Positions 23,871 to 63,141 of a stretch of 64,000 bases of DNA are shown piece by piece (positions within the stretch are counted from its first letter, which is position 1; each line of letters opens with the position of its first letter). The stretch lies in the NCBI GenBank assembly GCA_004431415.1, contig QPMI01000657.1, forward strand, positions 186,001 to 250,000, given 5' to 3'. The notes under the pieces are model-generated. The model was given only the letters and a program-made list of their open reading frames with translations, made no database searches and was not told where the DNA came from. Origin of the DNA: Cyanophora paradoxa CCMP329. Its lineage: Eukaryota; Plantae; Glaucophyta. Both the position numbers and the translations under genes were made by a program.

Positions 23871-23879
23871 CGGCTCCGG

Positions 23880-30022: not shown

Positions 30023-30034
30023 AGAGTGAGGAGT
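30023..30034 (+). promoter_or_regulatory. Polypurine tract
   Basis: AGAGTGAGGAGT immediately 5' of the 3' LTR. Confidence 0.6.
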
Positions 30035-30290: not shown

Positions 30291-30405
30291 GGAATTACAT
30301 CACGAAGAAGCGGAGGACAAAATTAAGTAAGATGAATAACAGGAAGCAGACTAGTAAGAGGAACAACAAGACAACGTGGACGCTTAACCGCACCCCCTTC
30401 CCCCG

Positions 30406-35033: not shown

Positions 35034-35448
35034 GCAAAATTTAGAGGAGACAGCGCTAGCTAGCGCTGGTAGAAGTGGTTGGCATGCAAAACCGCCGCGT
35101 GACACCCCAGCGCCGCGCGAAGGAGAGGCCCGGAGAGCTCAGATCTACAGCTAGAGCCTAGCAAAATTTAGAAGAGAAAGCTGGGAGAAGTGGTTGCCAT
35201 GCAAAACCGCCGCGTGACACCCCAGCGCCGCGCGAATGAGAGGCTAGCAAAATTTACAGGAGACAGCTGGGAGAAGTGATTGCCATGCAAAACCGCCGCG
35301 TGACACCCCAGCGCCGCGCGAAGGAGAGGCTAGCAAAATTTAGAGGAGACAGCTGGGAGAAGTGGTTGCCATGCACAACCGCCGCGTGACACCCCAGCGC
35401 CGCGCGAAGGAGAGGCCCGGAGAGCTCAGATCTACATCTAGAGCCTAG
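35034..35448 (+). repeat. Minisatellite, 4 units of ~86-127 bp (long-short-short-long)
   Basis: Repeated GCAAAATTTAGAGGAGACAGC...GCAAAACCGCCGCGTGACACCCCAGCGCCGCGCGAA. Confidence 0.9.
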
Positions 35449-36336
35449 AAATTGGTTTTCCCCGAGTTCCTGCAGACCGCCGGGCAACCTGCTCTAGACT
35501 CAAGTTCTGACTGCAGCTGCAGACTGGAGAGAGAAGATGAGAGCTGTCGCGAAGAGACGACAAGATCGAAAGAGAGAAAACTGGTTTTCCCCCTCGAAAA
35601 CCGCTTTTTGCGTGCACGCTCCCAGCGACCAACACGTGTCGCAACGCCATTTTGGCTCATTTTTTTCCTGCGTTGCAAACTGGACCTCGAAAACGGCCTC
35701 ATAGAAGAATTTTGGCTGAAGCGAGGGAACGGGAAGCAAGGGGGGGAAGACCTTCGGTCTTCTTTTCCCCCCTTGCAAAAAAGCTCGATCGCGAGCGTTG
35801 TATCTAATTATTTAAATTAGAACCTCGAGCTGCGAATTCGAATGGTTAACGTTACACGACCGTCGGGCGCGTACACGTAACGTGTCGCTCTCGCCTTAGT
35901 ATACGTAGTGGGATCATCGCATTGTCAAGACCTGATCATGATATCGATGGGCCTCCCGCGCGCGGGCTTTCGCCGAGTCGCAGACTCGGGAGTTCGACAA
36001 TGTACATCAATATCTACAACCGGAAAGTACAAAGGATGCGAAAACACAGAACATGTACACCCAACAACTCCAAATAAATAGCTAGCTAGCTCGGGAGTCG
36101 GGACTGGCCTGGCGCCCTAGTATTGACACAAATATTAATATCCTGCGAAACTGCAACAAGTCGCAAAAGTGAAAAGCGCAAAATCCTGTAAAGTGCGAAA
36201 CTGAATCTCGAAGGTGCTAAAATCAAAGGCCTTGCCCCGAAGCTATCTACTTCATAACAAAGTAAATTTCAAGCGCATCATGGCATCTGCTGCCGGGCTG
36301 CTGTAGGACGCGGGGCGACGAAATTAAAGCTCTGCG

Positions 36337-38764: not shown

Positions 38765-38797
38765 CTGTTCACGTGCCCGGGGCACGAGAGGGCGGTC

Positions 38798-38835
38798 CAC
38801 TGGGGCTTAAGAAAGTCTGTTTCCCGGGGGAAACA
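38798..38835 (+). repeat. Left TIR
   Basis: CACTGGGGCTTAAGAAAGTCTGTTTCCCGGGGGAAACA. Confidence 0.93.
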
Positions 38836-39732
38836 GTCACATGTTTCCCGGCTAGCCGGGAAACATGCGCCAGTTTCCCGGGAGGTGGGAAACAGAGCTG
38901 TAACCTGGTCGTGAGGCGAGTCAGCAGCGCGGGGACGCAGCGCTGTGCCACTGCGTACGCTGACCTTACCTACATAGCTGAGGATGGCGCCGCAAAGAGC
39001 CGATGGCCAGATTGGCCCGGTTGGCCGTTTGCTGCTGTGACCGGGTTCGTCAAGAAAACGAGCGCGCGCCACCAAAGCGCGCGGTTCAAAGTTGCTTACA
39101 GCTCATTTGGAGACGTTCTAGGCGGCTAAAACGTGTGCTTTGGGGTTGGCGTGGTCCGCCGATCAAATGTTGGGCAGAGCCCGGAACGCATCGGTGGCGC
39201 GCCATTCTGCTGCAGAAATGCTTTGATGTGATCGATAAAGCAAACTCGAGACCCGCGGCTCGCGCCGGAGAGCGATCTGTGTAACGTGCGGGTCGGGAAA
39301 CACCAGGTGGGAAACGCGGGCGAGTTGCATGGCTTGGCCAACCACGTCACTGGCGCTCGCTGGGAGTCCAGAACGACGCCTGTACATCGTCTGGTGCTTA
39401 GATGCAACGCTTAGATGGTTGAATAGCGCCGCTTTTCAACCTGTCTGGCTTGACGACGTCGTGCTGTGTTTCATATCGGACTCCTCCCCCCCCCTTTGAA
39501 GCTGTATCCCTGCTAGCCAGGAAACGTCTGCGCATGCAGCTTTTGCGGGGTTCTTTGAAGTTGCTGTTTCTCGTCCAGGATGCTATGATGCCTAAATGCG
39601 ATGCCGTTCACGTTGTGACTTGAATTCGGCCATGGCTGAGGTGCGACGTACCTTGCGCACATGCATTCGTTTCTTAGGGAAACATCTCGCACCCAATTCC
39701 AAAGCACCGCTAATGATGAATTCTTAGTTCCC

Positions 39733-42700
39733 AACGAGTGCTTAATTCGAAATGAATGATGCTACTGACCTTCGCCGTGCATGCACTCTGATCGGCCGCC
39801 TCACGGCTGGAATCACTGAATCAGAAACGACCCACTTATGCACGCCGCCATCGCCAGAGCCGACCGCCCGAGATGGCGATCATGATCACTCTAGATCAGC
39901 GAGGTGCGGCTCAGGCCGCAAACGAGCAGTTGCAGGAGTTGCAGCTACGATAATGCTAACCGGATTTAGGAAATGGGAGAGCCGCTCGCCCTCCCAGTGC
40001 AGTAGTAGCGACAGTGCGGCAAAGCCGTGATCATGAGTACTGAAAACTAGCTTCCAAGGCTCTCTGCGAGGTTGCCCGCTTTAAACGAGTGCTTAATTCG
40101 ACATGAATGATGCTACTGACCTTCGCCGTGCATGCACTCTGATCGGCCGCCTTACGGCTGGAATCACTGAATCAGCAACGACGTCGACCCATGCCGCCAT
40201 CGCCAGAGCCGACCGCCCGAGATGGCGATCACTCTAGATCAGCGAGGTGCGGCTCAGGCCGCAAACGAGCAGTTGCAGGAGTTGCAGCTACGATAATGCT
40301 AACCGGATTTAGGAAATGGGAGAGCCGCTCGCCCTCCCGGTGCAGTAGTAGCGACAGTGCGGCAAAGCCGTGATCATGAGTACTGAAAACTAGCTTCTCA
40401 GGCTCTCTGCGAGGTTGCCCGCTTTAAACGAGTGCTTAATTCGAAATGAATGATGCTACTGACCTTCGCCGTGCATGCACTCTGATCGGCCGCCTCACGG
40501 CTGGAATCACTGAATCAGAAACGACCCACTTATAATTATGCACGCCGCCATCGCCAGAGCCGACCGCCCGAGATGGCGATCACTCTAGATCAGCGATGTG
40601 CGGCTCAGGCCGCAAACGAGCAGTTGCAGGAGTTGCAGCTACGATAATGCTAACCGGATTTGGGAAATGGGAGAGCCGCTCGCCCTCCCGGTGCAATAGT
40701 AGCGACAGTGCGGCAAAGCCGTGATCATGAGTACTGAAAACTAGCTTCCAAGGCTCTCTGCGAGGTTGCCCGCTTTAAACGAGTGCTTAATTCGACATGA
40801 ATGATGCTACTGACCTTTGCCGTGCATGCACTCTGATCGGCCGCCTCACGGCTGGAATCACTGAATCAGCAACGACGTCGACCCACGCCGCCATCGCCAG
40901 AGCCGACCGCCCGAGATGGCGATCACTCTAGATCAGCGAGGTGCGGCTCAGGCCGCAAACGAGCAGTTGCAGGAGTTGCAGCTACGATAATGCTAACCGG
41001 ATTTGGGAAATGGGAGAGCCGCTCGCCCTCCCGGTGCAATAGTAGCGACAGTGCGGCAAAGCCGTGATCATGAGTACTGAAAACTAGCTTCCAAGGCTCT
41101 CTGCGAGGTTGCCCGCTTTAAACGAGTGCTTAATTCGACATGAATGATGCTACTGACCTTCGCCGTGCATGCACTCTGATCGGCCGCCTTACGGCTGGAA
41201 TCACTGAATCAGAAACGACCCACTTATGCACGCCGCCATCGCCAGAGCCGACCGCCCGAGATGGCGATCATGATCACTCTAGATCAGCGAGGTGCGGCTC
41301 AGGCCGCAAACGAGCAGTTGCAGGAGTTGCAGCTACGATAATGCTAACCGGATTTAGGAAATGGGAGAGCCGCTCGCCCTCCCGGTGCAGTAGTAGGGAC
41401 AGTGCGGCAAAGCCGTGATCATGAGTACTGAAAACTAGCTTCCAAGGCTCTCTGCGAGGTTGCCCGCTTTAAACGAGTGCTTAATTCGAAATGAATGATG
41501 CTACTGACCTTCGCCGTGCATGCACTCTGATCGGCCGCCTCACGGCTGGAATCTCTGAATCAGCAACGACGTCGACCCACGCCGCCATCGCCAGAGCCGA
41601 CCGCCCGAGATGGCGATCACTCTAGATCAGCGAGGTGCGGCTCAGGCCGCAAACGAGCAGTTGCAGGAGTTGCAGCTACGATAATGCTAACCGGATTTGG
41701 GAAATGGGAGAGCCGCTCGCCCTCCCGGTGCAATAGTAGCGACAGTGCGGCAAAGCCGTGATCATGAGTACTGAAAACTAGCTTCCAAGGCTCTCTGCGA
41801 GGTTGCCCGCTTTAAAAGAGTGCTTAATTCGAAATGAATGATGCTACTGACCTTCGCCGTGCATGCACTCTGATCGGCCGCCTCACGGCTGGAATCACTG
41901 AATCAGCAACGACGTCGACCCACGCCGCCATCGCCAGAGCCGACCGCCCGAGATGGCGATCACTCTAGATCAGCGAGGTGCGGCTCAGGCCGCAAACGAG
42001 CAGTTGCAGGAGTTGCAGCTACGATAATGCTAACCGGATTTGGGAAATGGGAGAGCCGCTCGCCCTCCCGGTGCAATAGTAGCGACAGTGCGGCAAAGCC
42101 GTGATCATGAGTACTGAAAACTAGCTTCCAAGGCTCTCTGCGAGGTTGCCCGCTTTAAACGAGTGCTTAATTCGAAATGAATGATGCTACTGACCTTCGC
42201 CGTGCATGCACTCTGATCGGCCGCCTCACGGCTGGAATCACTGAATCAGAAACGACCCACTTATGCACGCCGCCATCGCCAGAGCCGACCGCCCGAGATG
42301 GCGATCACTCTAGATCAGCGAGGTGCGGCTCAGGCCGCAAACGAGCAGTTGCAGGAGTTGCAGCTACGATAATGCTAACCGGATTTAGGAAATGGGAGAG
42401 CCGCTCGCCCTCCGGTGCAATAGTAGCGACAGTGCGGCAAAGCCGCGATCATGAGTACTGAAAACTAGCTTCCAAGGCTCTCTGCGAGGTTGCCCGCTTT
42501 AAACGAGTGCTTAATTCGAAATGAATGATGCTACTGACCTTCGCCGTGCATGCACTCTGATCGGCCGCCTCACGGCTGGAATCACTGAATCAGAAACGAC
42601 CCACTTATGCACGCCGCCATCGCCAGAGCCGACCGCCCGAGATGGCGATCACTCTAGATCAGCGATGTGCGGCTCAGGCCGCAAACGAGCAGTTGCAGGA

Positions 42701-45700
42701 GTTGCAGCTACGATAATGCTAACCGGATTTGGGAAATGGGAGAGCCGCTCGCCCTCCCGGTGCAATAGTAGCGACAGTGCGGCAAAGCCGTGATCATGAG
42801 TACTGAAAACTAGCTTCCAAGGCTCTCTGCGAGGTTGCCCGCTTTAAACGAGTGCTTAATTCGAAATGAATGATGCTACTGACCTTCGCCGTGCATGCAC
42901 TCTGATCGGCCGCCTCACGGCTGGAATCACTGAATCAGAAACGACCCACTTATGCACGCCGCCATCGCCAGAGCCGACCGCCCGAGATGGCGATCACTCT
43001 AGATCAGCGAGGTGCGGCTCAGGCCGCAAACGAGCAGTTGCAGGAGTTGCAGCTACGATAATGCTAACCGGATTTAGGAAATGGGAGAGCCGCTCGCCCT
43101 CCCGGTGCAATAGTAGCGACAGTGCGGCAAAGCCGCGATCATGAGTACTGAAAACTAGCTTCCAAGGCTCTCTGCGAGGTTGCCCGCTTTAAACGAGTGC
43201 TTAATTCGAAATGAATGATGCTACTGACCTTCGCCGTGCATGCACTCTGATCGGCCGCCTCACGGCTGGAATCACTGAATCAGAAACGACCCACTTATGC
43301 ACGCCGCCATCGCCAGAGCCGACCGCCCGAGATGGCGATCACTCTAGATCAGCGAGGTGCGGCTCAGGCCGCAAACGAGCAGTTGCAGGAGTTGCAGCTA
43401 CGATAATGCTAACCGGATTTAGGAAATGGGAGAGCCGCTCGCCCTCCCGGTGCAGTAGTAGCGACAGTGCGGCAAAGCCGCGATCATGAGTACTGAAAAC
43501 TAGCTTCCAAGGCTCTCTGCGAGGTTGCCCGCTTTAAACGAGTGCTTAATTCGAAATGAATGATGCTACTGACCTTCGCCGTGCATGCACTCTGATCGGC
43601 CGCCTCACGGCTGGAATCACTGAATCAGAAACGACCCACTTATGCACGCCGCCATCGCCAGAGCCGACCGCCCGAGATGGCGATCACTCTAGATCAGCGA
43701 GGTGCGGCTCAGGCCGCAAACGAGCAGTTGCAGGAGTTGCAGCTACGATAATGCTAACCGGATTTAGGAAATGGAGAGCCGCTCGCCCTCCGGTGCAATA
43801 GTAGCGACAGTGCGGCAAAGCCGTGATCATGAGTACTGAAAACTAGCTTCCAAGGCTCTCTGCGAGGTTGCCCGCTTTAAACGAGTGCTTAATTCGAAAT
43901 GAATGATGCTACTGACCTTCGCCGTGCATGCACTCTGATCGGCCGCCTCACGGCTGGAATCACTGAATCAGAAACGACCCACTTATGCACGCCGCCATCG
44001 CCAGAGCCGACCGCCCGAGATGGCGATCACTCTAGATCAGCGAGGTGCGGCTCAGGCCGCAAACGCGCAGTTGCAGGAGTTGCAGCTACGATAATGCTAA
44101 CCGGATTTAGGAAATGGGAGAGCCGCTCGCCCTCCCGGTGCAGTAGTAGCGACAGTGCGGCAAAGCCGTGATCATGAGTACTGAAAACTAGCTTCCAAGG
44201 CTCTCTGCGAGGTTGCCCGCTTTAAACGAGTGCTTAATTCGAAATGAATGATGCTACTGACCTTCGCCGTGCATGCACTCTGATCGGCCGCCTCACGGCT
44301 GGAATCACTGAATCAGAAACGACCCACTTATGCACGCCGCCATCGCCAGAGCCGACCGCCCGAGATGGCGATCACTCTAGATCAGCGAGGTGCGGCTCAG
44401 GCCGCAAACGAGCAGTTGCAGGAGTTGCAGCTACGATAATGCTAACCGGATTTAGGAAATGGGAGAGCCGCTCGCCCTCCCGGTGCAGTAGTAGCGACAG
44501 TGCGGCAAAGCCGTGATCATGAGTACTGAAAACTAGCTTCCAAGGCTCTCTGCGAGGTTGCCCGCTTTAAACGAGTGCTTAATTCGAAATGAATGATGCT
44601 ACTGACCTTCGCCGTGCATGCACTCTGATCGGCCGCCTCACGGCTGGAATCACTGAATCAGAAACGACCCACTTATGCACGCCGCCATCGCCAGAGCCGA
44701 CCGCCCGAGATGGCGATCACTCTAGATCAGCGAGGTGCGGCTCAGGCCGCAAACGAGCAGTTGCAGGAGTTGCAGCTACGATAATGCTAACCGGATTTAG
44801 GAAATGGGAGAGCCGCTCGCCCTCCCGGTGCAGTAGTAGTGACAGTGCGGCAAAGCCGTGATCATGAGTACTGAAAACTAGCTTCCAAGGCTCTCTGCGA
44901 GGTTGCCCGCTTTAAACGAGTGCTTAATTCGAAATGAATGATGCTACTGACCTTCGCCGTGCATGCACTCTGATCGGCCGCCTCACGGCTGGAATCACTG
45001 AATCAGAAACGACCCACTTATGCACGCCGCCATCGCCAGAGCCGACCGCCCGAGATGGCGATCACTCTAGATCAGCGAGGTGCGGCTCAGGCCGCAAACG
45101 AGCAGTTGCAGGAGTTGCAGCTACGATAATGCTAACCGGATTTGGGAAATGGAGAGCCGCTCGCCCTCCGGTGCAGTAGTAGCGACAGTGCGGCAAAGCC
45201 GCGATCATGAGTACTGAAAACTAGCTTCCAAGGCTCTCTGCGAGGTTGCCCGCTTTAAACGAGTGCTTAATTCGAAATGAATGATGCTACTGACCTTCGC
45301 CGTGCATGCACTCTGATCGGCCGCCTCACGGCTGGAATCACTGAATCAGAAACGACCCACTTATGCACGCCGCCATCGCCAGAGCCGACCGCCCGAGATG
45401 GCGATCACTCTAGATCAGCGAGGTGCGGCTCAGGCCGCAAACGAGCAGTTGCAGGAGTTGCAGCTACGATAATGCTAACCGGATTTAGGAAATGGGAGAG
45501 CCGCTCGCCCTCCCGGTGCAGTAGTAGCGACAGTGCGGCAAAGCCGCGATCATGAGTACTGAAAACTAGCTTCCAAGGCTCTCTGCGAGGTTGCCCGCTT
45601 TAAACGAGTGCTTAATTCGAAATGAATGATGCTACTGACCTTCGCCGTGCATGCACTCTGATCGGCCGCCTCACGGCTGGAATCACTGAATCAGAAACGA

Positions 45701-48700
45701 CCCACTTATGCACGCCGCCATCGCCAGAGCCGACCGCCCGAGATGGCGATCACTCTAGATCAGCGAGGTGCGGCTCAGGCCGCAAACGAGCAGTTGCAGG
45801 AGTTGCAGCTACGATAATGCTAACCGGATTTGGGAAATGGAGAGCCGCTCGCCTCCCGGTGCAATAGTAGCGACAGTGCGGCAAAGCCGTGATCATGAGT
45901 ACTGAAAACTAGCTTCCAAGGCTCTCTGCGAGGTTGCCCGCTTTAAACGAGTGCTTAATTCGAAATGAATGATGCTACTGACCTTCGCCGTGCATGCACT
46001 CTGATCGGCCGCCTCACGGCTGGAATCACTGAATCAGAAACGACCCACTTATGCACGCCGCCATCGCCAGAGCCGACCGCCCGAGATGGCGATCACTCTA
46101 GATCAGCGAGGTGCGGCTCAGGCCGCAAACGCGCAGTTGCAGGAGTTGCAGCTACGATAATGCAAACCGGATTTAGGAAATGGGAGAGCCGCTCGCCCTC
46201 CGGTGCAGTAGTAGCGACAGTGCGGCAAAGCCGTGATCATGAGTACTGAAAACTAGCTTCCAAGGCTCTCTGCGAGGTTGCCCGCTTTAAACGAGTGCTT
46301 AATTCGAAATGAATGATGCTACTGACCTTCGCCGTGCATGCACTCTGATCGGCCGCCTCACGGCTGGAATCACTGAATCAGAAACGACCCACTTATGCAC
46401 GCCGCCATCGCCAGAGCCGACCGCCCGAGATGGCGATCACTCTAGATCAGCGAGGTGCGGCTCAGGCCGCAAACGAGCAGTTGCAGGAGTTGCAGCTACG
46501 ATAATGCTAACCGGATTTAGGAAATGGGAGAGCCGCTCGCCCTCCCGGTGCAATAGTAGCGACAGTGCGGCAAAGCCGTGATCATGAGTACTGAAAACTA
46601 GCTTCCAAGGCTCTCTGCGAGGTTGCCCGCTTTAAACGAGTGCTTAATTCGAAATGAATGATGCTACTGACCTTCGCCGTGCATGCACTCTGATCGGCCG
46701 CCTCACGGCTGGAATCACTGAATCAGAAACGACCCACTTATGCACGCCGCCATCGCCAGAGCCGACCGCCCGAGATGGCGATCACTCTAGATCAGCGAGG
46801 TGCGGCTCAGGCCGCAAACGCGCAGTTGCAGGAGTTGCAGCTACGATAATGCAAACCGGATTTAGGAAATGGGAGAGCCGCTCGCCCTCCCGGTGCAGTA
46901 GTAGCGACAGTGCGGCAAAGCCGTGATCATGAGTACTGAAAACTAGCTTCCAAGGCTCTCTGCGAGGTTGCCCGCTTTAAACGAGTGCTTAATTCGAAAT
47001 GAATGATGCTACTGACCTTCGCCGTGCATGCACTCTGATCGGCCGCCTCACGGCTGGAATCACTGAATCAGAAACGACCCACTTATGCACGCCGCCATCG
47101 CCAGAGCCGACCGCCCGAGATGGCGATCACTCTAGATCAGCGAGGTGCGGCTCAGGCCGCAAACGAGCAGTTGCAGGAGTTGCAGCTACGATAATGCTAA
47201 CCGGATTTGGGAAATGGGAGAGCCGCTCGCCCTCCCGGTGCAGTAGTAGTGACAGTGCGGCAAAGCCGTGATCATGAGTACTGAAAACTAGCTTCCAAGG
47301 CTCTCTGCGAGGTTGCCCGCTTTAAACGAGTGCTTAATTCGAAATGAATGATGCTACTGACCTTCGCCGTGCATGCACTCTGATCGGTCGCCTCACGGCT
47401 GGAATCACTGAATCAGAAACGACCCACTTATGCACGCCGCCATCGCCAGAGCCGACCGCCCGAGATGGCGATCACTCTAGATCAGCGAGGTGCGGCTCAG
47501 GCCGCAAACGCGCAGTTGCAGGAGTTGCAGCTACGATAATGCAAACCGGATTTAGGAAATGGGAGAGCCGCTCGCCCTCCCGGTGCAGTAGTAGCGACAG
47601 TGCGGCAAAGCCGTGATCATGAGTACTGAAAACTAGCTTCCAAGGCTCTCTGCGAGGTTGCCCGCTTTAAACGAGTGCTTAATTCGAAATGAATGATGCT
47701 ACTGACCTTCGCCGTGCATGCACTCTGATCGGCCGCCTCACGGCTGGAATTACTGAATCAGAAACGACCCACTTATGCACGCCGCCATCGCCAGAGCCGA
47801 CCGCCCGAGATGGCGATCACTCTAGATCAGCGAGGTGCGGCTCAGGCCGCAAACGAGCAGTTGCAGGAGTTGCAGCTACGATAATGCTAACCGGATTTAG
47901 GAAATGGGAGAGCCGCTCGCGCTCCCGGTGCAGTAGTAGCGACAGTGCGGCAAAGCCGTGATCATGAGTACTGAAAACTAGCTTCCAAGGCTCTCTGCGA
48001 GGTTGCCCGCTTTAAACGAGTGCTTAATTCGAAATGAATGATGCTACTGACCTTCGCCGTGCATGCACTCTGATCGGCCGCCTCACGGCTGGAATCACTG
48101 AATCAGAAACGACCCACTTATGCACGCCGCCATCGCCAGAGCCGACCGCCCGAGATGGCGATCACTCTAGATCAGCGAGGTGCGGCTCAGGCCGCAAACG
48201 AGCAGTTGCAGGAGTTGCAGCTACGATAATGCTAACCGGATTTAGGAAATGGGAGAGCCGCTCGCCCTCCCGGTGCAGTAGTAGTGACAGTGCGGCAAAG
48301 CCGTGATCATGAGTACTGAAAACTAGCTTCCAAGGCTCTCTGCGAGGTTGCCCGCTTTAAACGAGTGCTTAATTCGAAATGAATGATGCTACTGACCTTC
48401 GCCGTGCATGCACTCTGATCGGCCGCCTCACGGCTGGAATCACTGAATCAGAAACGACCCACTTATGCACGCCGCCATCGCCAGAGCCGACCGCCCGAGA
48501 TGGCGATCACTCTAGATCAGCGAGGTGCGGCTCAGGCCGCAAACGAGCAGTTGCAGGAGTTGCAGCTACGATAATGCTAACCGGATTTGGGAAATGGGAG
48601 AGCCGCTCGCCCTCCCGGTGCAGTAGTAGTGACAGTGCGGCAAAGCCGTGATCATGAGTACTGAAAACTAGCTTCCAAGGCTCTCTGCGAGGTTGCCCGC

Positions 48701-51700
48701 TTTAAACGAGTGCTTAATTCGAAATGAATGATGCTACTGACCTTCGCCGTGCATGCACTCTGATCGGCCGCCTCACGGCTGGAATCACTGAATCAGAAAC
48801 GACCCACTTATGCACGCCGCCATCGCCAGAGCCGACCGCCCGAGATGGCGATCACTCTAGATCAGCGAGGTGCGGCTCAGGCCGCAAACGAGCAGTTGCA
48901 GGAGTTGCAGCTACGATAATGCTAACCGGATTTGGGAAATGGGAGAGCCGCTTGCCCTCCCGGTGCAATAGTAGCGACAGTGCGGCAAAGCCACGATCAT
49001 GAGTACTGAAAACTAGCTTCCAAGGCTCTCTGCGAGGTTGCCCGCTTTAAACGAGTGCTTAATTCGAAATGAATGATGCTACTGACCTTCGCCGTGCATG
49101 CACTCTGATCGGCCGCCTCACGGCTGGAATTACTGAATCAGCAACGACGTCGACCCACGTGCACGCCGCCATCGCCAGAGCCGACCGCCCGAGATGGCGA
49201 TCACTCTAGATCAGCGAGGTGCGGCTCAGGCCGCAAACGAGCAGTTGCAGGAGTTGCAGCTACGATAATGCTAACCGGATTTGGGAAATGGGAGAGCCGC
49301 TCGCCCTCCCGGTGCAGTAGTAGGGACAGTGCGGCAAAGCCGCGATCATGAGTACTGAAAACTAGCTTCCAAGGCTCTCTGCGAGGTTGCCCGCTTTAAA
49401 CGAGTGCTTAATTCGAAATGAATGATGCTACTGACCTTCGCCGTGCATGCACTCTGATCGGCCGCCTCACGGCTGGAATCACTGAATCAGAAACGACCCA
49501 CTTATGCACGCCGCCATCGCCAGAGCCGACCGCCCGAGATGGCGATCACTCTAGATCAGCGAGGTGCGGCTCAGGCCGCAAACGAGCAGTTGCAGGAGTT
49601 GCAGCTACGATAATGCTAACCGGATTTAGGAAATGGGAGAGCCGCTCGCCCTCCCGGTGCAGTAGTAGTGACAGTGCGGCAAAGCCGTGATCATGAGTAC
49701 TGAAAACTAGCTTCCAAGGCTCTCTGCGAGGTTGCCCGCTTTAAACGAGTGCTTAATTCGAAATGAATGATGCTACTGACCTTCGCCGTGCATGCACTCT
49801 GATCGGTCGCCTCACGGCTGGAATCACTGAATCAGAAACGACCCACTTATGCACGCCGCCATCGCCAGAGCCGACCGCCCGAGATGGCGATCACTCTAGA
49901 TCAGCGAGGTGCGGCTCAGGCCGCAAACGAGCAGTTGCAGGAGTTGCAGCTACGATAATGCTAACCGGATTTGGGAAATGGGAGAGCCGCTCGCCCTCCC
50001 GGTGCAATAGTAGCGACAGTGCGGCAAAGCCGCGATCATGAGTACTGAAAACTAGCTTCCAAGGCTCTCTGCGAGGTTGCCCGCTTTAAACGAGTGCTTA
50101 ATTCGAAATGAATGATGCTACTGACCTTCGCCGTGCATGCACTCTGATCGGTCGCCTCACGGCTGGAATCACTGAATCAGAAACGACCCACTTATGCACG
50201 CCGCCATCGCCAGAGCCGACCGCCCGAGATGGCGATCACTCTAGATCAGCGAGGTGCGGCTCAGGCCGCAAACGAGCAGTTGCAGGAGTTGCAGCTACGA
50301 TAATGCTAACCGGATTTGGGAAATGGGAGAGCCGCTCGCCTCCCGGTGCAATAGTAGCGACAGTGCGGCAAAGCCGCGATCATGAGTACTGAAAACTAGC
50401 TTCCAAGGCTCTCTGCGAGGTTGCCCGCTTTAAACGAGTGCTTAATTCGAAATGAATGATGCTACTGACCTTCGCCGTGCATGCACTCTGATCGGCCGCC
50501 TCACGGCTGGAATTACTGAATCAGCAACGACGTCGACCCACGTGCACGCCGCCATCGCCAGAGCCGACCGCCCGAGATGGCGATCACTCTAGATCAGCGA
50601 GGTGCGGCTCAGGCCGCAAACGAGCAGTTGCAGGAGTTGCAGCTACGATAATGCAAACCGGATTTGGGAAATGGGAGAGCCGCTCGCCCTCCCGGTGCAG
50701 TAGTAGCGACAGTGCGGCAAAGCCGTGATCATGAGTACTGAAAACTAGCTTCCAAGGCTCTCTGCGAGGTTGCCCGCTTTAAACGAGTGCTTAATTCGAA
50801 ATGAATGATGCTACTGACCTTCGCCGTGCATGCACTCTGATCGGCCGCCTCACGGCTGGAATCACTGAATCAGCATGCGCAACGACCCACGCCGCCATCG
50901 CCAGAGCCGACCGCCCGAGATGGCGATCACTCTAGATCAGCGAGGTGCGGCTCAGGCCGCAAACGAGCAGTTGCAGGAGTTGCAGCTACGATAATGCTAA
51001 CCGGATTTGGGAAATGGGAGAGCCGCTCGCCCTCCCGGTGCAATAGTAGCGACAGTGCGGCAAAGCCGCGATCATGAGTACTGAAAACTAGCTTCCAAGG
51101 CTCTCTGCGAGGTTGCCCGCTTTAAACGAGTGCTTAATTCGAAATGAATGATGCTACTGACCTTCGCCGTGCATGCACTCTGATCGGCCGCCTCACGGCT
51201 GGAATTACTGAATCAGCAACGACGTCGACCCACTTATGCACGCCGCCATCGCCAGAGCCGACCGCCCGAGATGGCGATCATGATCACTCTAGATCAGCGA
51301 GGTGCGGCTCAGGCCGCAAACGAGCAGTTGCAGGAGTTGCAGCTACGATAATGCTAACCGGATTTAGGAAATGGGAGAGCCGCTCGCCCTCCCAGTGCAG
51401 TAGTAGCGACAGTGCGGCAAAGCCGTGATCATGAGTACTGAAAACTAGCTTCCAAGGCTCTCTGCGAGGTTGCCCGCTTTAAACGAGTGCTTAATTCGAC
51501 ATGAATGATGCTACTGACCTTCGCCGTGCATGCACTCTGATCGGTCGCCTCACGGCTGGAATCACTGAATCAGAAACGACCCACTTATGCACGCCGCCAT
51601 CGCCAGAGCCGACCGCCCGAGATGGCGATCACTCTAGATCAGCGAGGTGCGGCTCAGGCCGCAAACGAGCAGTTGCAGGAGTTGCAGCTACGATAATGCT

Positions 51701-54700
51701 AACCGGATTTGGGAAATGGGAGAGCCGCTCGCCCTCCCGGTGCAATAGTAGCGACAGTGCGGCAAAGCCGCGATCATGAGTACTGAAAACTAGCTTCCAA
51801 GGCTCTCTGCGAGGTTGCCCGCTTTAAACGAGTGCTTAATTCGAAATGAATGATGCTACTGACCTTCGCCGTGCATGCACTCTGATCGGCCGCCTCACGG
51901 CTGGAATTACTGAATCAGCAACGACGTCGACCCACGTGCACGCCGCCATCGCCAGAGCCGACCGCCCGAGATGGCGATCACTCTAGATCAGCGAGGTGCG
52001 GCTCAGGCCGCAAACGAGCAGTTGCAGGAGTTGCAGCTACGATAATGCAAACCGGATTTGGGAAATGGGAGAGCCGCTCGCCCTCCCGGTGCAGTAGTAG
52101 CGACAGTGCGGCAAAGCCGTGATCATGAGTACTGAAAACTAGCTTCCAAGGCTCTCTGCGAGGTTGCCCGCTTTAAACGAGTGCTTAATTCGAAATGAAT
52201 GATGCTACTGACCTTCGCCGTGCATGCACTCTGATCGGCCGCCTCACGGCTGGAATCACTGAATCAGCATGCGCAACGACCCACGCCGCCATCGCCAGAG
52301 CCGACCGCCCGAGATGGCGATCACTCTAGATCAGCGAGGTGCGGCTCAGGCCGCAAACGAGCAGTTGCAGGAGTTGCAGCTACGATAATGCTAACCGGAT
52401 TTGGGAAATGGGAGAGCCGCTCGCCCTCCCGGTGCAATAGTAGCGACAGTGCGGCAAAGCCGCGATCATGAGTACTGAAAACTAGCTTCCAAGGCTCTCT
52501 GCGAGGTTGCCCGCTTTAAACGAGTGCTTAATTCGAAATGAATGATGCTACTGACCTTCGCCGTGCATGCACTCTGATCGGCCGCCTCACGGCTGGAATT
52601 ACTGAATCAGCAACGACGTCGACCCACGTGCACGCCGCCATCGCCAGAGCCGACCGCCCGAGATGGCGATCACTCTAGATCAGCGAGGTGCGGCTCAGGC
52701 CGCAAACGAGCAGTTGCAGGAGTTGCAGCTACGATAATGCTAACCGGATTTGGGAAATGGGAGAGCCGCTCGCCCTCCCGGTGCAGTAGTAGCGACAGTG
52801 CGGCAAAGCCGCGATCATGAGTACTGAAAACTAGCTTCCAAGGCTCTCTGCGAGGTTGCCCGCTTTAAACGAGTGCTTAATTCGAAATGAATGATGCTAC
52901 TGACCTTCGCCGTGCATGCACTCTGATCGGCCGCCTCACGGCTGGAATCACTGAATCAGAAACGACCCACTTATGCACGCCGCCATCGCCAGAGCCGACC
53001 GCCCGAGATGGCGATCACTCTAGATCAGCGAGGTGCGGCTCAGGCCGCAAACGAGCAGTTGCAGGAGTTGCAGCTACGATAATGCTAACCGGATTTAGGA
53101 AATGGGAGAGCCGCTCGCCCTCCCGGTGCAGTAGTAGTGACAGTGCGGCAAAGCCGTGATCATGAGTACTGAAAACTAGCTTCCAAGGCTCTCTGCGAGG
53201 TTGCCCGCTTTAAACGAGTGCTTAATTCGAAATGAATGATGCTACTGACCTTCGCCGTGCATGCACTCTGATCGGTCGCCTCACGGCTGGAATCACTGAA
53301 TCAGAAACGACCCACTTATGCACGCCGCCATCGCCAGAGCCGACCGCCCGAGATGGCGATCACTCTAGATCAGCGAGGTGCGGCTCAGGCCGCAAACGAG
53401 CAGTTGCAGGAGTTGCAGCTACGATAATGCTAACCGGATTTGGGAAATGGGAGAGCCGCTCGCCCTCCCGGTGCAATAGTAGCGACAGTGCGGCAAAGCC
53501 GCGATCATGAGTACTGAAAACTAGCTTCCAAGGCTCTCTGCGAGGTTGCCCGCTTTAAACGAGTGCTTAATTCGAAATGAATGATGCTACTGACCTTCGC
53601 CGTGCATGCACTCTGATCGGCCGCCTCACGGCTGGAATTCGAATTACTGAATCAGCAACGACGTCGACCCACGTGCACGCCGCCATCGCCAGAGCCGACC
53701 GCCCGAGATGGCGATCACTCTAGATCAGCGAGGTGCGGCTCAGGCCGCAAACGAGCAGTTGCAGGAGTTGCAGCTACGATAATGCAAACCGGATTTGGGA
53801 AATGGGAGAGCCGCTCGCCCTCCCGGTGCAGTAGTAGCGACAGTGCGGCAAAGCCGTGATCATGAGTACTGAAAACTAGCTTCCAAGGCTCTCTGCGAGG
53901 TTGCCCGCTTTAAACGAGTGCTTAATTCGAAATGAATGATGCTACTGACCTTCGCCGTGCATGCACTCTGATCGGCCGCCTCACGGCTGGAATCACTGAA
54001 TCAGCATGCGCAACGACCCACGCCGCCATCGCCAGAGCCGACCGCCCGAGATGGCGATCACTCTAGATCAGCGAGGTGCGGCTCAGGCCGCAAACGAGCA
54101 GTTGCAGGAGTTGCAGCTACGATAATGCTAACCGGATTTGGGAAATGGGAGAGCCGCTCGCCCTCCCGGTGCAATAGTAGCGACAGTGCGGCAAAGCCGC
54201 GATCATGAGTACTGAAAACTAGCTTCCAAGGCTCTCTGCGAGGTTGCCCGCTTTAAACGAGTGCTTAATTCGAAATGAATGATGCTACTGACCTTCGCCG
54301 TGCATGCACTCTGATCGGCCGCCTCACGGCTGGAATTACTGAATCAGCAACGACGTCGACCCACGTGCACGCCGCCATCGCCAGAGCCGACCGCCCGAGA
54401 TGGCGATCACTCTAGATCAGCGAGGTGCGGCTCAGGCCGCAAACGAGCAGTTGCAGGAGTTGCAGCTACGATAATGCTAACCGGATTTGGGAAATGGGAG
54501 AGCCGCTCGCCCTCCGGTGCAGTAGTAGCGACAGTGCGGCAAAGCCGTGATCATGAGTACTGAAAACTAGCTTCCAAGGCTCTCTGCGAGGTTGCCCGCT
54601 TTAAACGAGTGCTTAATTCGAAATGAATGATGCTACTGACCTTCGCCGTGCATGCACTCTGATCGGCCGCCTCACGGCTGGAATCACTGAATCAGCATGC

Positions 54701-54994
54701 GCAACGACCCACGCCGCCATCGCCAGAGCCGACCGCCCGAGATGGCGATCACTCTAGATCAGCGAGGTGCGGCTCAGGCCGCAAACGAGCAGTTGCAGGA
54801 GTTGCAGCTACGATAATGCTAACCGGATTTAGGAAATGGGAGAGCCGCTCGCCCTCCCGGTGCAGTAGTAGCGACAGTGCGGCAAAGCCGTGATCATGAG
54901 TACTGAGAGCTCGCCCTCCCGGTGCAGTAGTAGCGACAGTGCGGCAAAGCTGTGATCATGAGTACTGAAAACTAGCTTTCAAGGCTCTCTGCAA
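39733..54994 (+). repeat. Satellite array, 44 units of ~345 bp
   Basis: 44 occurrences of ATGAATGATGCTACTGACC counted from 39752 to 54623, spaced 343-357 bp apart; units are nearly identical. Confidence 0.98.
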
Positions 54995-55351: not shown

Positions 55352-58300
55352 TTAGCTGGCGCCAGTAATAACGGTAACTGAATGCATTATGGACGAACCA
55401 GCATTGAAATCAATTGGGAATATATATCGATGCAATGATGACTTTTCGGCAGCAGGCTGCACAGAAACTCCAAGAGGTGGGACATTTGGAGGGACTGCAA
55501 AGAGAAACCCTGTGTTGACGTTGCAAAACACTCATTCAAAATATACGTGGAAAGCCTTGTACCTGCATGAGACAGCTGATCTGTGCGCTCAGAGCCTCTA
55601 GATGTGGAAGCCCTTAAGCTTCGAATTCGCTCGGCAGCGGGATGGCTGTTCATGATGTGTCGAATCTTGTCTCGAATTAATTCTGACGCTGCATGAAGGT
55701 CTTGAAAGAATCTTGGATTGGCTTTTCGCATCCTGCACACTGCGAATAGTGAATAGGCGTGTGTGAATTCAATTTTGCGAAATTATAACAATATAACTAC
55801 TGACGTTCTTCGAGCAGCCATGAAGTTTGAAGAAGTGCGAAACGATAAGGCTGAGTTGTGACAGCATCTGTGAAGACTCTAATAAGTGTATGCAGTTGCT
55901 TTTAGAAACGACTCTTATAAGTATATGCAATTGCTTTAGAGCGGCTCCATACCTACATAATCGTTTTGTGCGAAATGCTTGGCAGAGACTTCGAAAGTGC
56001 GATACCAGGGATCTTCTCCACTTGGCATTTGCTTCACCTGAGTAACAATCGCATATGAATGTGCAATATATGCATGTAATAATTACGCACAAGAATGAAT
56101 GATGGAATCAACATCTTTCCCGTAATCACACCGTGGACGTAGACGTGGTCACGATTGGCTGCAGCGCTCACGAACTGCTCGAATGCGAAATTCGATTTTG
56201 CCGTTCTGCAGGCGGCTGGCCATTGCATGCGATAAGCTTGCATGCTCGAGCTCGCATTATACGCATATGCCGACACACACCCGTATTCGATTCATCGAAG
56301 ACAAGGGCTATGCCGAACTCCAGGCAGATTGCCGATAGCTGCAGAAAGTAGTCCAGCGACATATAACGTATTCCTTCGTAGGGATCCATTTGGATCGCCT
56401 CGCAGATGATGACCTATTTCCACGCTAGTCACGCTTGAATTTCACAAACAGGACTATAAGACATGCATGCGCATGCAGATACGTACGTATACACGAGCAT
56501 ACCTTGATGGGCAGCTTCGAAAAAGGATGCGACTTTGTCAGCTCTTCTTGAGTGATCTCTGCACTTTCTTGCTTGCGACCTTGAATCATCTGTATATATT
56601 TATATCGGAAGCAAGGCATCCCCCGGCCTGGCATCAGGCGATCATCTCTGCATCTTAAGCTTGCAAAGTTTCAAACCGTGCGAAGTTCTCGAATAGCGTT
56701 TTGAACCGCCGCTGCTTTTGGTTCTGGTCGTTGCTTACTTGGATGTTCATTCTCGTAGATGCAAGGGATGACGACGTATTTTTCCCTTGGGATAGTACAA
56801 TCAGCGGCTCTAAATTTTCGTATGCACATAAATTAAAAAGAGACAGTTGGCAGACCTTCCCATAATTGCACTAGCAGGCATGGGCTCTCGTTTGTTGGTC
56901 GCGTTTGGTACATTTGTTCCGAGAGCGCCTCTTGATGTTCCGTAGCATCCTTTTGCCCAGACATACGTCCCCATTTTGCACTTGGGATTTGAGTGCAGGC
57001 TCGCGATCTATTTGAAGTTTAGTCGTCTCAAAATTTGACAAATAGGAAGAAAAGAGCACCAGGCATGCAATCTCATTGATCACCGATTCCAAGTCAGATG
57101 AGCTGCCAGCGTTTGCACGCATCAACAATTTGAAGCCCTCTGACAACGTGTTGAGGTAGCCATCAATCGTTTTCCTCAAAGCTTCAATTTTCTCTGCGTC
57201 ACGTACACATCACTGAACTGTTGATTCAGCATCTAGCGTTTGAGAATTAATATACCCGTTGAGTAATACTGAAATTGTACATGTGTGCCGTCGACGTCGA
57301 CGTTAACGTTGTCATGCACCAATGAGGGCAAGGCCATTGGGTCTGACAAAGCATGCCGCATGAATCTGTAAAGGTTGAAGAACAAATTAGATACGGCAGA
57401 TATCGCGATCGATCATGGGATTGCAGCCGAGTATAAATCACTCACTTGCCGGTAAGATCATGGGTGACTTTCGGTTGTGAAAGTACGGATGCCATTGATG
57501 AGCCCCAAGCTCTGAAAAAATCTTGCTTGCCTGCATTGTAGGTGGATCTCAACTGTGGATCGTGATGCAGTCGACTCTGCAAAATTTCCACAGCCACTGC
57601 TGGTGCCACCAGGGACCAAGTGGAGTCGTTGGCCTCCGGATCTGGGCTGCAACTGGAACTAGTCCTCCAATCTTGAAGGGGATCCAGAAGCCCTGAAAGA
57701 TCGTCTGTGGATAGTTCAGCACATGCTCTGCGTATGCAAAAGAGGCTTAATCAGCGTTAACGTTGTTATGAAGTATAAAAAGAACATCCTCAGGCACCGA
57801 AACGCTTCGAGCGCTTCTTCAGGACTATGGAGCTGACTGAAGCTGAGAAACATGATGAGCACTTGGACGATAGGGCTCTTGAAATTATTTGCCAGCTGCA
57901 GATTCATTGCCCTGTCGACGTAAAATATATTAACAAGCGAATTTCAGAGCAATTGCGAGCATTGTACTGACTTCATGACGGCTGTGAAGATGCCCGTTAA
58001 TGCAGACAAGCATGGAAGATCCGACTTCAGGTTTCGAAGCAGTTCTGTTCGTTTCACGAATGAGGTCGCCGCGGCGCGGCCCTGTTGCGGGCCGCATTCG
58101 CAAAGAACGGGATCGCGCACGGCTAGCGCTGAGGGGCCTGGCAGCCTCGAAGGCGGCCGCCTTCCGCTTTGCAGCTGCACCGGACTCTGTGATTTTCAAA
58201 CCGAGGGCGCGAGTTAGCTGCTAACCGGGCCGCACACGCAAGGAGCAGCTGCACGCACGGGTGCCTGGGGATGCGGGAGCACTGCTAGCGCTGGCGGCCG

Positions 58301-58729
58301 CCTTCCGCTTGGCAGCTGCCATCAATTGCAAGCTTTCAATTGCAAGCTTTCGCGTGCAGGGCGCCCCCGCGGCGCGCCTAGCGTGCCTGTGCCTTGCGGC
58401 GCGTGTTGCTATAGATGTTAGGGACTGCTCAGCACGGGCTGCAGCGCCACCGGCAGCTGTTCCGTTTTGTATGGCACATGCAAGGCGGCCGTTCTCGGAG
58501 CGAAATCGATTGCCGGGCGGTCTAGCGGGGCCGAATATCGCTTTTAGATGCTAGAGAGTGAAAGCGCACCTCCGGAGGCTTGGCAATCGATTCTGCTACC
58601 CGCTCTGGCCGCGGCGGCATTGGCGGTATGCTGGCGCTTCACGGCGGCGAGCTTGCCATGCCCTTTCTGATGCGATCGCTTTGGCTTCTCCTGGGCGTCC
58701 GCCGCGGTGACTTCGGGGGCGTCCTCCAT
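55352..58729 (-). CDS. Multi-exon divergent class-III PLP-dependent aminotransferase-like protein with a basic low-complexity N-terminus (transposon cargo)
   Basis: Spliced exons give colinear class-III motifs: ANAGSSSDLESVI, YVWAKGCYGTSRGAL, VIICEAIQ...DYFLQLSAICLEFGIALVFDESNT|AACRTAKSNFAFEQF...VITGKML, IRDKIRHIMNSHP, AGFLFAV, LHRYIFPIDF, then TAA at 55354-55352. Start codon and some exon edges are tentative. Confidence 0.75.
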
Positions 58730-59293
58730 TGCCGCTCGGCGTTGCCAAGTTGCTCAGCGTTCCTTTCAAGTTTGCTCGAGCTCTAGATCTAGATCTCCGC
58801 TGCTGCTTGTCCTCTTAAAAGAGCGATTCCCCTCTAGATCTCCGCGTTTGATCTCCTCTAGCTTCACGGCGCCGCTTGCCCCCCCCTCCAGAAAGCGTAC
58901 CCCCAAAAGTTTTGGGAACGGCCGTCCTCGTTCAAAAAAGCGAGCAGCTCTGCCTACCGAACAGCTCAGCGACTGCTGCCGAATGAAGATCATTGCCGAT
59001 CGGAATGCAAACCATTTGAGGGCGAGGAGAGGTCAGGTTTGTGTGGCTGTTCGTGCTCCAGGTGCGCTCCCGCTCATCACAGCTGCACGCTTGCAATAGG
59101 CTGTTTCCTTAGTTGCGCAAAAGCGATAGCAATTGGTTCGCAGCTGCTCATCCGCCCCAGCCGCGGCCGCAGGCTGCAGCTGCTCATGGCCATGGAATGG
59201 ATCGATGGCGCCGCGCGCGCCGGCAAGCGCGACCTTCAACGAAGGTGCGCATCCCCTTGGTTGCAACTTCTCATCATTTCCCGCCTGCTCATA

Positions 59294-61352
59294 GCCGCGC
59301 CTCGCAGAGTGATCGCTTTCTCGGGGGGTTGGCTCTGGCGGGCTGTTTCTGACCCGAGTGCTGGGGCGTCGCTCCGGCCGATCCGAGTGCATGGCGAAGG
59401 TCAGTTCCATCATTCATTTCGATATTTGCACTCGTCTCAATCGTGCGACCTTGCAGGCATCTTGGGAGCTTCGCTTTCGGCACTCTCGGCGTGGCCGCGC
59501 CGCACCTGGTGGGCAGGCGCGGCGCTCTCGCTTCGTAATAAAGGTGAGTATACGTATACGTATCGCTGCTGCTGCAACTTCTAATCGTTTCGGGCCTGAC
59601 CCGCGCCTCGCAGAGTGATCGCTTTCTAAGGGGGTTGGCTCTGGCGGGCTGTTTCTGACCCGAGTGCTGGGGCATCGCTCCGGCCGATCCGAGTGCATGG
59701 CGAAGGTCAGTTCCATCATTCATTTCGATATTTGCACTCGTCTCAATCGTGCGACCTCGCAGGCATCTTGGGAGCTTCGCTTTCGGCACTCTCGGCGTGG
59801 CCGCGCCGCAGCTGGTGGGCGGGCGGCGCTCTCGCTTCGTAATAAAGGTGAGTATACGTATACGTATCGCTGCTGCTGCAACTTCTTATCGTTTCGGGCC
59901 TGACCCGCGCCTCGCAGAGTGATCGCTTTCTAAGGGGGTTGGCTCTGGCGGGCTGTTTCTGACCCGAGTGCTGGGGCGTCGCTCCGGCCGATCCGAGTGC
60001 ATGGCGAAGGTCAGTTCCATCATTCATTTCGATATTTGCACTCGTCTCAATCGTGCGACCTCGCAGGCATCTTGGGAGCTTCGCTTTCGGCACTCTCGGC
60101 GTGGCCGCGCCGCAGCTGGTGGGCGGGCGGCGCTCTCGCTTCGTAATAAAGGTGAGTATACGTATACGTATCGCTGCTGCTGCAACTTCTAATGGTTTCG
60201 GGCCTGACCCGCGCCTCGCAGAGTGATCGCTTTCTAAGGGGGTTGGCTCTGGCGGGCTGTTTCTGACCCGAGTGCTGGGGCGTCGCTCCGGCCGATCCGA
60301 GTGCATGGCGAAGGTCAGTTCCATCATTCATTTCGATATTTGTGCTCGTCTCAATCGTGCGACCTCGCAGGCATCTTGGGAGCTTCGCTTTCGGCACTCT
60401 CGGCGTGGCCGCGCCGCAGCTGGTGGGCGGGCGGCGCTCTCGCTTCGTAATAAAGGTGAGTATCGCTGCTGCTGCAACTTCTTATCGTTTCGGGCCTGAC
60501 CCGCGCCTCGCAGAGTGATCGCTTTCTAAGGGGGTTGGCTCTGGCGGGCTGTTTCTGACCCGAGTGCTGGGGCGTCGCTCCGGCCGATCCGAGTGCATGG
60601 CGAAGGTCAGTTCCATCATTCATTTCGATATTTGCACTCGTCTCAATCGTGCGACCTCGCAGGCATCTTGGGAGCTTCGCTTTCGGCACTCTCGGCGTGG
60701 CCGCGCCGCAGCTGGTGGGCGGGCGGCGCTCTCGCTTCGTAATAAAGGTGAGTATACGTATACGTATCGCTGCTGCTGCAACTTCCAATCGTTTCCGCCC
60801 TGAGCTACGCCTCGCAGAGTGATCGCTTTCTCGGGGGGATGGCTCTGGCGGGCTGTTTCTGACCCGAGTGCTGGGGCGTCGCTCCGGCCGATCCGAGTGC
60901 ATGGCGAAGGTCAGTTCCATCATTCATTTCGATATTTGTGCTCGTCTCAATCGTGCGACCTCGCAGGCATCTTGGGAGCTTCGCTTTCGGCACTCTCGGC
61001 GTGGCCGCGCCGCAGCTGGTGGGCGGGCGGCGCTCTTGCTTCGTAATAAAGGTGAGTATACGTATACGTATCGCTGCTGCTGCAACTTCTTATCGTTTCG
61101 GGCCTGACCCGCGCCTCGCAGAGTGATCGCTTTCTCGGGGGGATGGCTCTGGCGGGCTGTTTCTGACCCGAGTGCTGGGGCGTCGCTCCGGTCGATCCGA
61201 GTGCATGGCGAAGGTCAGTTCCATCATTCATTTCGATATTTGCACTCGTCTCAATCGTGCGACCTCGCAGGCATCTTGGGAGCTTCGCTTTCGGCACTCT
61301 CGGCGTGGCCGTGCCGCAGCTGGAGGGCAGGCGCGGCGCTCGTACTTCGTAA
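59294..61352 (-). repeat. Second satellite array, 7 units of ~304 bp, an inverted diverged homologue of the 345-bp unit
   Basis: Unit spacing 306, 304, 304, 292, 304, 304. The reverse complement shares blocks ACGAGTGC, TCGAAATGAATGATG, ACTGACCTTCGCC, GATCGGCCG, CGCCAGAGCC, GCGATCACTCT and CTGCGAGGT, in the same order as the left array. Confidence 0.95.
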
Positions 61353-63048
61353 ATTAAAGAAGGCGAGTATCTCCGTAGCACTATCAATATAGCTAACAAA
61401 GATGGCTATTGGTTAAAGCGCTATCGTTAGTGTACATGTATTAATTTTAGCGATAGGCGAGCACTACCAGCGATTTTAATGCGTTAGTACTAGTGTTTTA
61501 ATCATGGTTCACCGATCGCGAGTCACGGTTTCTTTTTTGCAAAAGTGGACCGTCGGACGTCGCATTGATACACCACGGCACATGTATCAATGTTCTACGT
61601 GACGTGCCCTTCCGACCGGTCATCGATATCTATCTAGCCGAAGGTGCTAGCTAGGTGCCGGTCATGGGTCACCGAGTCACGGTTTCAGACGTCAACGTGT
61701 CACGTTTTCAGACGTCAATGTTGAATTCTTAAAGATAATGCCAGGATCTAGACTCGTTGAGTTCTATAGCCCCGCAGCCCCTCATGATCAACGACTGCTA
61801 ATAGGCTTCATCTTTGCATGTCCCCTGGTCTGCGCAGATCAAGCCTAGATCGTGGCTGTATCCGTAGCACTCTAGATCTTTATAAACCGTTGAACTGACT
61901 TGCAAATACGCTCGCAGTGCTTTTCTCCGGGCGGCGCCTCAACTGAACGGTCCTAGGCCTCGGACAAGGTGATTCATTCATGATTTGCAGCTGCACTAGC
62001 TATACCTATAGTACTAGATCTAGATTTGCAGCTGTACTATCATATATAGTACGGATCTGGCGTTATATAATTAGATGAAATAGCTATAGGCAATCTCTAT
62101 TTTGAAATTCGAATTCAACCGCCGATCGAGAATCGAGATCCGTTGGTAACATTTGCATTCTATCGTTGCTATATGTATCAATATTAATGCTATCATTCTA
62201 GATACAGATTAGAGAGCCGGCGCAAGCGCTAGCTATGCAGATCTACCTCCTGCTGCAGTCCACTGATGATACGGCTTCCTTTTCCACAGGTCAGCTCTAC
62301 ATCCGCTCTGTATGTGTTCAGGTCCGAGTGCGAGCTCGCTCTAGATCTGCAATATACGTTTATATATATACATGATTATTAAAACTGATTGCGGTATGGC
62401 TTTGTACGAATGTATACACGCAGTTTTCTTCTACTGGCCTCCGCCAGCTGCAGCCGCCCGGTCAATATCATGATCATGAGGTGCTTTGAACTTGCAATTG
62501 CTATCATAGCAAGCTGCACTAGTAATATAGCTAATTATTGCTCGCATGCGCAGCGTTGGCATGCGTATGGCACGCGGTCATGAGTCATGATCATGATCCG
62601 CTGCAGCTGCAGCTGCAGCTGCGCGCAGCAAGCTTAAGTACTGAGTAGGAGATCTAGAGCAGCGCTATAGCTAGCTATATACATTGCTCGCCTTGCAGCG
62701 TTAGCACAGCACGCGTACGTATACGATGCAGCCCAGCAAGCAGAAGATCATCGGATCCCGGCCTAGCTAGCTCGGATCTTAGCTAGCTAGCTCGCTAGGA
62801 TCTTAGCTAGCTCGCTAGGATCTTAGCTAGCTCGTTAGCTTGAGTTGTACATGTGTATAAAGAGTACAGCGTTAACGTTGCGCATGTTTGGCGATGTAAA
62901 AACCAGCTAGATGGGTCGGGTAATGGGCAAACGAAAAAAAAGTTACCCGGTGGGAAACTCAGCGATGTTTCCCACCTGACGTTTCCCACCTGATGGTCCC
63001 CATGGGGGTCCTCCGCCCCGGTGTGTTACCTATAGGGTAACATGCATG

Positions 63049-63086
63049 TGTTTCCCCCGGGAAACATACTTTCTTAGGCACCAGTG
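63049..63086 (-). repeat. Right TIR
   Basis: Reverse complement reads CACTGGTGCCTAAGAAAGTATGTTTCCCGGGGGAAACA. Confidence 0.93.
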
Positions 63087-63141
63087 GTCAGCCTCACCGG
63101 CTCACCGAGTCAAAGGGGCGGGGGCGGGGAGGGGGGGGTAC

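Follow-up and report, generated by a model that had tools for sequence, protein, structure and literature searches.

An intact gene related to the class-III aminotransferases lies inside a bounded CACTA-type transposable element of the glaucophyte Cyanophora paradoxa, has several diverged copies, and keeps the residues that bind PLP. The reading given about an even chance here (a probability of roughly 0.5) is that the gene has long been an accessory of a CACTA family in this glaucophyte and forms part of a chromatin-modifying cassette. The window analysed is a 64,000-nucleotide stretch of GC-rich eukaryotic DNA with short introns, and coordinates refer to it unless a contig is named.

The element occupies 38798-63086 (24,289 bp), with CACTG and CAGTG at its ends and a 3-bp target duplication, GTC, on both flanks (38795-38797 and 63087-63089). 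Its terminal inverted repeats are imperfect and about 50 bp long, the left one (38798-38849, plus strand) being about 83% identical to the right (63035-63086, minus strand, its CAGTG ending at 63086). There are nine copies of the subterminal motif GGGAAAC in the arm on the left, as far as 39732, and five in the arm on the right, from 61353, against a background of three in the first 36 kb of the window. Termini, 3-bp duplication and subterminal motifs are those of CACTA/EnSpm (CMC) elements; the item lacking, by comparison with an autonomous member, is the transposase, as the open frames inspected in the arms gave no convincing coding stretch for TnpD/TNP2, and the element is therefore classed as non-autonomous. 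Two tandem arrays lie in its interior, one of a 345-bp unit (39733-54906, plus strand, about 44 copies, 97% matches) and one of a 304-bp unit (59295-61352, minus strand, about seven copies). The 304-bp unit resembles the 345-bp unit when inverted (78% over 116 bp). The arrays look like products of one ancestral unit that face each other with the gene between, and a 90-codon open reading frame in the 345-bp unit is without a match in the protein collection, as are the other open reading frames of the window that were tried. With the element excised in silico, its flanks join into a plausible intron of a host gene on the minus strand. The insertion site in that intron, GCTGAC, resembles a branch site, and one part of the interrupted gene looks, by reading, D-Ala-D-Ala-ligase-like and another SET-like; the two pieces tested against Pfam gave no confirmation.

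Elsewhere in the window, a young Gypsy-type retroelement (11596-30292, with 264-bp terminal repeats that are 99.6% identical) encodes a zinc knuckle, protease, RT/RNase H and integrase, and has about 7 kb of unassigned coding sequence between gag and protease. It is flanked by a duplicated stretch (5608-5705 and 31002-31099), each copy of which adjoins one of two look-alike genes (9500-10513 and 31668-33950) with leucine-rich-repeat-like text and no Pfam match. Low-GC intergenic DNA at 35034-35451 holds three to four copies of an 86-bp tandem repeat.

The gene of interest spans 55352-58322 on the minus strand. All motifs quoted in the original prediction, which had proposed a spliced class-III aminotransferase, are present on that strand where it had placed them, and the exons can be joined as it supposed: 15 GT-AG introns of 46-89 bp link 16 exons into an open frame of 650 codons that no stop interrupts, one exon (55867-55801) being additional within the span first read. 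The 650-aa product consists of a low-complexity start, a conserved helical region of about 130 aa and a class-III aminotransferase-like fold. Searches were made exon by exon, the joined translation being used for stops, motifs, variants and composition; in the alignments and the local profile each exon had a row of its own next to a database protein, and the core alignment also served as a query. HMMER with exon 11 over 1.84 billion representative proteins yielded two real relatives, P0001, from a Logan contig (L011), and P0002, which is C. paradoxa tig00020531_g10036 (EukProt; g10036 below), a gene prediction for which the host proteome lists three isoforms. P0003 and P0004, from the same search, were set aside as false matches driven by repeats. 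Nothing past P0001 and P0002 came from word-index searches, whether the query was exon 11, P0005 or the core alignment, and neither viral contigs nor JGI metagenomes contained relatives; with 15 introns and no viral relatives, a viral source of the gene is unsupported.

Read in order, exons 1-2 (58322-58259 and 58186-58121) hold a duplicated stretch, and exons 3-4 (58044-57972 and 57911-57798) encode helical N-terminal sequence with a weak match in L011 and no Pfam family. Exon 5 (57446-57727) has a D-F-x-x-A-W-G-S motif, common to both relatives, that resembles the N-terminal D-x-x-x-S-W motif of HemL/BioA. Exon 6 (57256-57365) is matched in L011; its candidacy as holder of an N-terminal D-x-x-G motif was dropped because the relatives place the motif in exon 5. 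All three family members keep NAGSxSDLE, with the phosphate-binding Gly-Ser position, in exon 7 (57060-57193), and [YW]GTSRG in exon 8 (56856-57007), where the PLP-stacking aromatic is kept and the His of the HG motif is lost. Exons 9-10 (56809-56677 and 56589-56503) contribute P-x-I-Y and S-H-P-F motifs also found in the relatives, exon 11 (56281-56413) a conserved Glu, the PLP-binding Asp (GIALVFDE) and the PF00202 match, and exon 12 (56091-56215) the conserved Arg that follows DE..T, together with the Schiff-base Lys (G-K-x-L-x-P-S-F). D-P-W and T-x-Q-[PS]-Y-R motifs follow in exons 13-14 (56037-55953 and 55867-55801), and exons 15-16 (55732-55563 and 55509-55352) encode the small domain, with H-R-[YF]-I-F-P as in L011 and the stop at 55352-55354. 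A possible upstream first exon (58570-58729, minus strand, ATG at 58729, with KPKR) is a candidate for linkage to the gene. The splice giving DESNT-AACRTAK has P0002 in the same register (DEALT-TCFRNG) and an L011 intron at the same place and in the same phase; with the relatives thus supporting the splice first read, the alternatives, reading through as DESNTGVCR or splicing at a GC donor, were rejected.

Class-III aminotransferase ancestry, that is PLP fold type I, is upheld by several lines of evidence from exon 11 and the relative P0002. Against PF00202, exon 11 scores E=2.6e-4, so that the Pfam match foreseen in the original prediction is found, but at 20.3 bits, below the gathering cut-off of 30.5 bits, which full-length P0002 (18.5 bits) likewise falls short of. 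In exon-wise scans against ten class-III reference enzymes significance was reached for exon 11 only, and the weak matches of this exon in PDB, plasmid and NCBIfam collections are nearly all class-III enzymes. With full-length P0002, 30 of 30 ESM Atlas matches were to PF00202, at 0.91, and a small family profile aligned with an ArgD-type profile over the core (hhalign 96%, E=3.7e-9). A low-confidence AlphaFold model of P0002 (pLDDT 49; 32 from a single sequence) matched fold-I chains among the matches listed, with a best Z of 9.2, a result that is partly circular given that its alignment was seeded with ArgD rows; MAFFT misregistered the alignment outside the core. Lysine aminotransferase, GABA-AT and BioA ranked top structurally for P0002, weakly and tied, and with the top candidates tied no class-III subfamily can be assigned to the family.

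The retention of the PLP-binding Asp and the Schiff-base Lys, and the alteration of other motifs, had both been proposed and both hold across the family. The Asp for the pyridine nitrogen (FDE) is invariant in the window gene, g10036 and L011, and the Lys (G-K) follows about 30-38 residues later in all three, in a strand-Lys-strand setting in the P0002 model. Also kept in all three are the phosphate-binding Gly-Ser (NAGS) and a stacking aromatic (Y/W/W), both placed by motif order, the Thr and Arg after FDE, and the exon 11 Glu; the Arg with which the small domain binds the keto-acid carboxylate seems to be retained. At the place expected for the partner-subunit Thr (T-x-x-G-N-P) each member has T-x-Q-[PS]-Y-R, in uncertain register. 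The His-Gly after the aromatic is absent (GT stands for HG), as is Gln/Ala-Thr-Gly after DE, where DESNT, DEALT and DEGMT are found instead, and the Gly-rich turn after the Lys is lost in all three. In short, by comparison with the E. coli enzymes, PLP-holding residues are kept, and the HG His, the DEVQ Gln and GGNP are lost. As they are shared by all three members, the odd motifs are family signatures, and their pattern agrees better with an altered substrate site than with decay. They might also be expected of a pseudo-enzyme, in which the fold would act, with no catalysis, as a dimer scaffold or as a PLP/SAM-binding module for a methyltransferase. The family-wide loss of the HG His, DEVQ Gln, GGNP loop and Gly-rich turn and the score under the PF00202 cut-off speak for that idea, which is nevertheless very doubtful, for Lys, Asp, Glu, Gly-Ser, aromatic and Arg have been kept despite saturated synonymous sites.

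A claim that fared poorly is that the basic N-terminus acts as a nuclear localisation signal. AAAKRKAAA occurs twice in one frame of the stretch duplicated in exons 1-2, of which a second frame is likewise open; the AAAKRKAAA frame is slightly favoured because the sole difference between the duplicated copies is synonymous in it. Conservation is lacking as well, the L011 relative having an acidic N-terminus, with KRKA at its C-terminus, and P0005 having neither. What the family does have in common ahead of the aminotransferase fold is the helical region (P0005 residues 40-150; window exons 3-5), for which Pfam gave no significant match (best E=0.036).

The age of the gene is seen most directly from L011, where the relative is collinear with window exons 4-14 and 16 and has introns at the corresponding positions after window exons 7, 9, 11, 12 and 13. 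Amino acid identity is 46% over 323 codons, nucleotide identity is 57/67/30% by codon position, and 17 of 70 four-fold sites are identical, i.e. synonymous sites are saturated, which together argue for long purifying selection and bear out the view that this is no recent capture. Closer copies are present in DNA run X1, which has exact contigs over most of the window gene (depth 34-42) and at least two further copies that are roughly 80-85% alike and alignable mostly exon by exon, their introns being unalignable and the listed indels all falling outside exons. Among the variants listed (40 of 181), those in exons left nine codons synonymous and 13 non-synonymous. One 4,719-bp contig of X1 combines a diverged copy with a match to 58936-59290, the non-coding stretch between the gene and the 304-bp array (joint from 57117 to 58936; variants at 59026-59192), and so at least one other copy has the layout of the window element. 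Conserved exons beside unalignable introns in these copies point to selection while in the element family, and the diverged copies, together with the distance to L011, count against the gene being an ordinary host enzyme that was duplicated and is now in decay.

CACTA elements capture genes, captured cargo is usually either decayed or a near-identical fragment, and the cargo of Pack elements consists of recent host fragments. The gene could accordingly be passive cargo, one member of a glaucophyte-specific host aminotransferase family captured long ago, with the neighbour of the L011 relative a chance matter in a gene-dense genome. This is somewhat unlikely, though it gains from the place of g10036 among predicted host genes, from the absence of visible terminal repeats at L011, from the SET-like part of the interrupted host gene, in that SET genes may be common, and from capture by CACTA elements being a known process. 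The exon conservation of the 80-85% copies counts against it by indicating selection within the element family, and so does base composition: the core coding sequence has a GC content of 48.5% (GC3 49%), far under the genome mean of 67.6% (PMC6704402). The original observation that GC is lower than in neighbouring host genes stands against the flanking host gene (63-73%), but low GC is not unique to the element's gene, since the nearby gene at 9500-10513 is at 51-59%.

The link to chromatin comes from the L011 contig (8.8 kb), which has just two genes and then repeat-like DNA at its end. Head-to-head with the aminotransferase relative lies a large intron-split gene (L011:200-5600, minus strand), the end of which (1070-230) encodes AWS (E=0.003), SET (E=1e-4, above the cut-off) and a post-SET cysteine cluster, SETD2 and ASH1L being the nearest PDB chains to the AWS-SET region, with weak E values. 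Its middle (near 3350-3050) carries class-I methyltransferase motifs (Y-G-E, D-F-G-A-G-N-G and G-V-E), presumably DOT1-like, a likeness for which Pfam, NCBIfam, PDB and plasmid tblastn gave no match. Pieces from a second sample are identical to L011 and stop at about the same point, and no transposon ends or terminal repeats are seen on the contig. The pairing of aminotransferase and methyltransferase is that of one locus, given the absence of the partner from the window element: CACTA ends are found at the one, the SET partner at the other, and no readable locus has both. An accessory role for the gene in a transposon, as originally proposed, agrees with its position inside the bounded CACTA element and finds no counterpart in transposon ends at L011; a role in chromatin draws circumstantial support from the head-to-head AWS-SET-postSET gene and none from the unconserved localisation signal.

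No metabolic genes neighbour the family at the window or L011 loci, and the only neighbour seen is of chromatin type. This weighs against a transposon accessory enzyme with a small-molecule role unconnected with chromatin, be it in amine or cofactor metabolism, as a toxin-antidote or in making a stress product that aids persistence. Such a role is rather improbable, even with the small-domain Arg for a keto-acid carboxylate seemingly in place and with the persistence of the window gene apart from any methyltransferase partner; all characterised class-III enzymes known to us act on small molecules.

If the gene is indeed an old accessory gene of a chromatin-modifying cassette, the window copy would be a non-autonomous derivative that has retained the enzyme gene and is missing transposase and methyltransferase partner. 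The protein would be an active PLP dimer that takes an amino group from an omega-amine, its preferred substrate perhaps a lysine-type side chain (free or in a histone), alternatively SAM or an amine derived from it, and enzyme and partner methyltransferases together might protect the element from repressive chromatin during brief expression. The choice of substrate is a guess guided by the methyltransferase partner and by the weak, tied structural leanings: a lysine-type substrate is unlikely, SAM or a polyamine less likely again, and some other substrate on a par with the latter; the substrates first suggested (SAM, polyamines, modified bases) gained no support. The most specific form of the idea has a PLP transaminase strip histone lysine of its epsilon-amine (or divert SAM) and so block repressive methylation, beside a DOT1-like and H3K36-type writer of active marks. 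It is quite improbable; no class-III aminotransferase is known to us to use a lysine within a protein as substrate, and class-III active sites are buried.

In three presumed RNA runs no contig fell on any modelled exon, though contigs cannot prove silence; the sole part matched, in all three, was 58427-58497, by contigs of 60-70 bp that are about 87% alike and come from another locus. In C. paradoxa repeats are methylated and methylated genes are mostly silent (PMC12344493), with which the lack of transcripts agrees.

SET, TET/JBP and VANC proteins are anti-silencing cargo of transposons. The pairing at L011 with a histone-methyltransferase-like gene hints at use of vitamin-B6 enzymes on chromatin by transposons, and should the dual histone methyltransferase link be true, it would bring a new kind of chemistry to the conflict between host and transposon in an early-branching relative of plants. 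No account was found of a PLP enzyme that a transposon has long kept as cargo: an aminotransferase is not mentioned in PMC12730594, and the literature, covered slightly as regards subscription papers and Repbase Reports, yielded no transposon-borne class-III aminotransferase. As judged from its motifs, the family would be an orphan class-III branch with predicted catalytic residues intact and substrate site rebuilt, and as such a direct target for an enzyme screen.

Compared with known class-III aminotransferases (lysine epsilon-aminotransferase PDB 2cin, GABA-AT, BioA/DAPA synthase, ArgD), the family is alike in fold type I, in motif order and in its Asp, Lys, Glu, Gly-Ser and stacking aromatic, and unlike in an identity of about 20%, in GT for HG, DEVQ without its Gln and a replaced GGNP, and in the extra N-terminal helical region. 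With the plant mobile domain (PMD, PF10536; MAIN/MAIL1, PMC5418596) it has in common only an 'aminotransferase-like' name and transposon association; no exon, nor P0002 or P0005, matched PF10536, and PMD identity was rejected in favour of the PF00202 match. The enlarged En/Spm elements of the red alga Chondrus crispus, which have 4-5 ORFs (PMC6431247), and Pack-CACTA elements resemble the window element in CACT ends, 3-bp duplication, a size of 16-24 kb and extra genes, whereas the window copy combines a single intact, old gene with two satellite arrays related to each other and lacks a transposase. Transposons that carry chromatin enzymes (PMC12730594) include HarbingerS and MuDR of Phytophthora with SET cargo, fungal EnSpm/Plavaka/KDZ with TET/JBP cargo, and VANDAL elements with anti-silencing proteins; the likeness lies in a long-kept accessory gene and in the SET neighbour of the L011 relative, and the difference in that the cargo in the window is a PLP enzyme.
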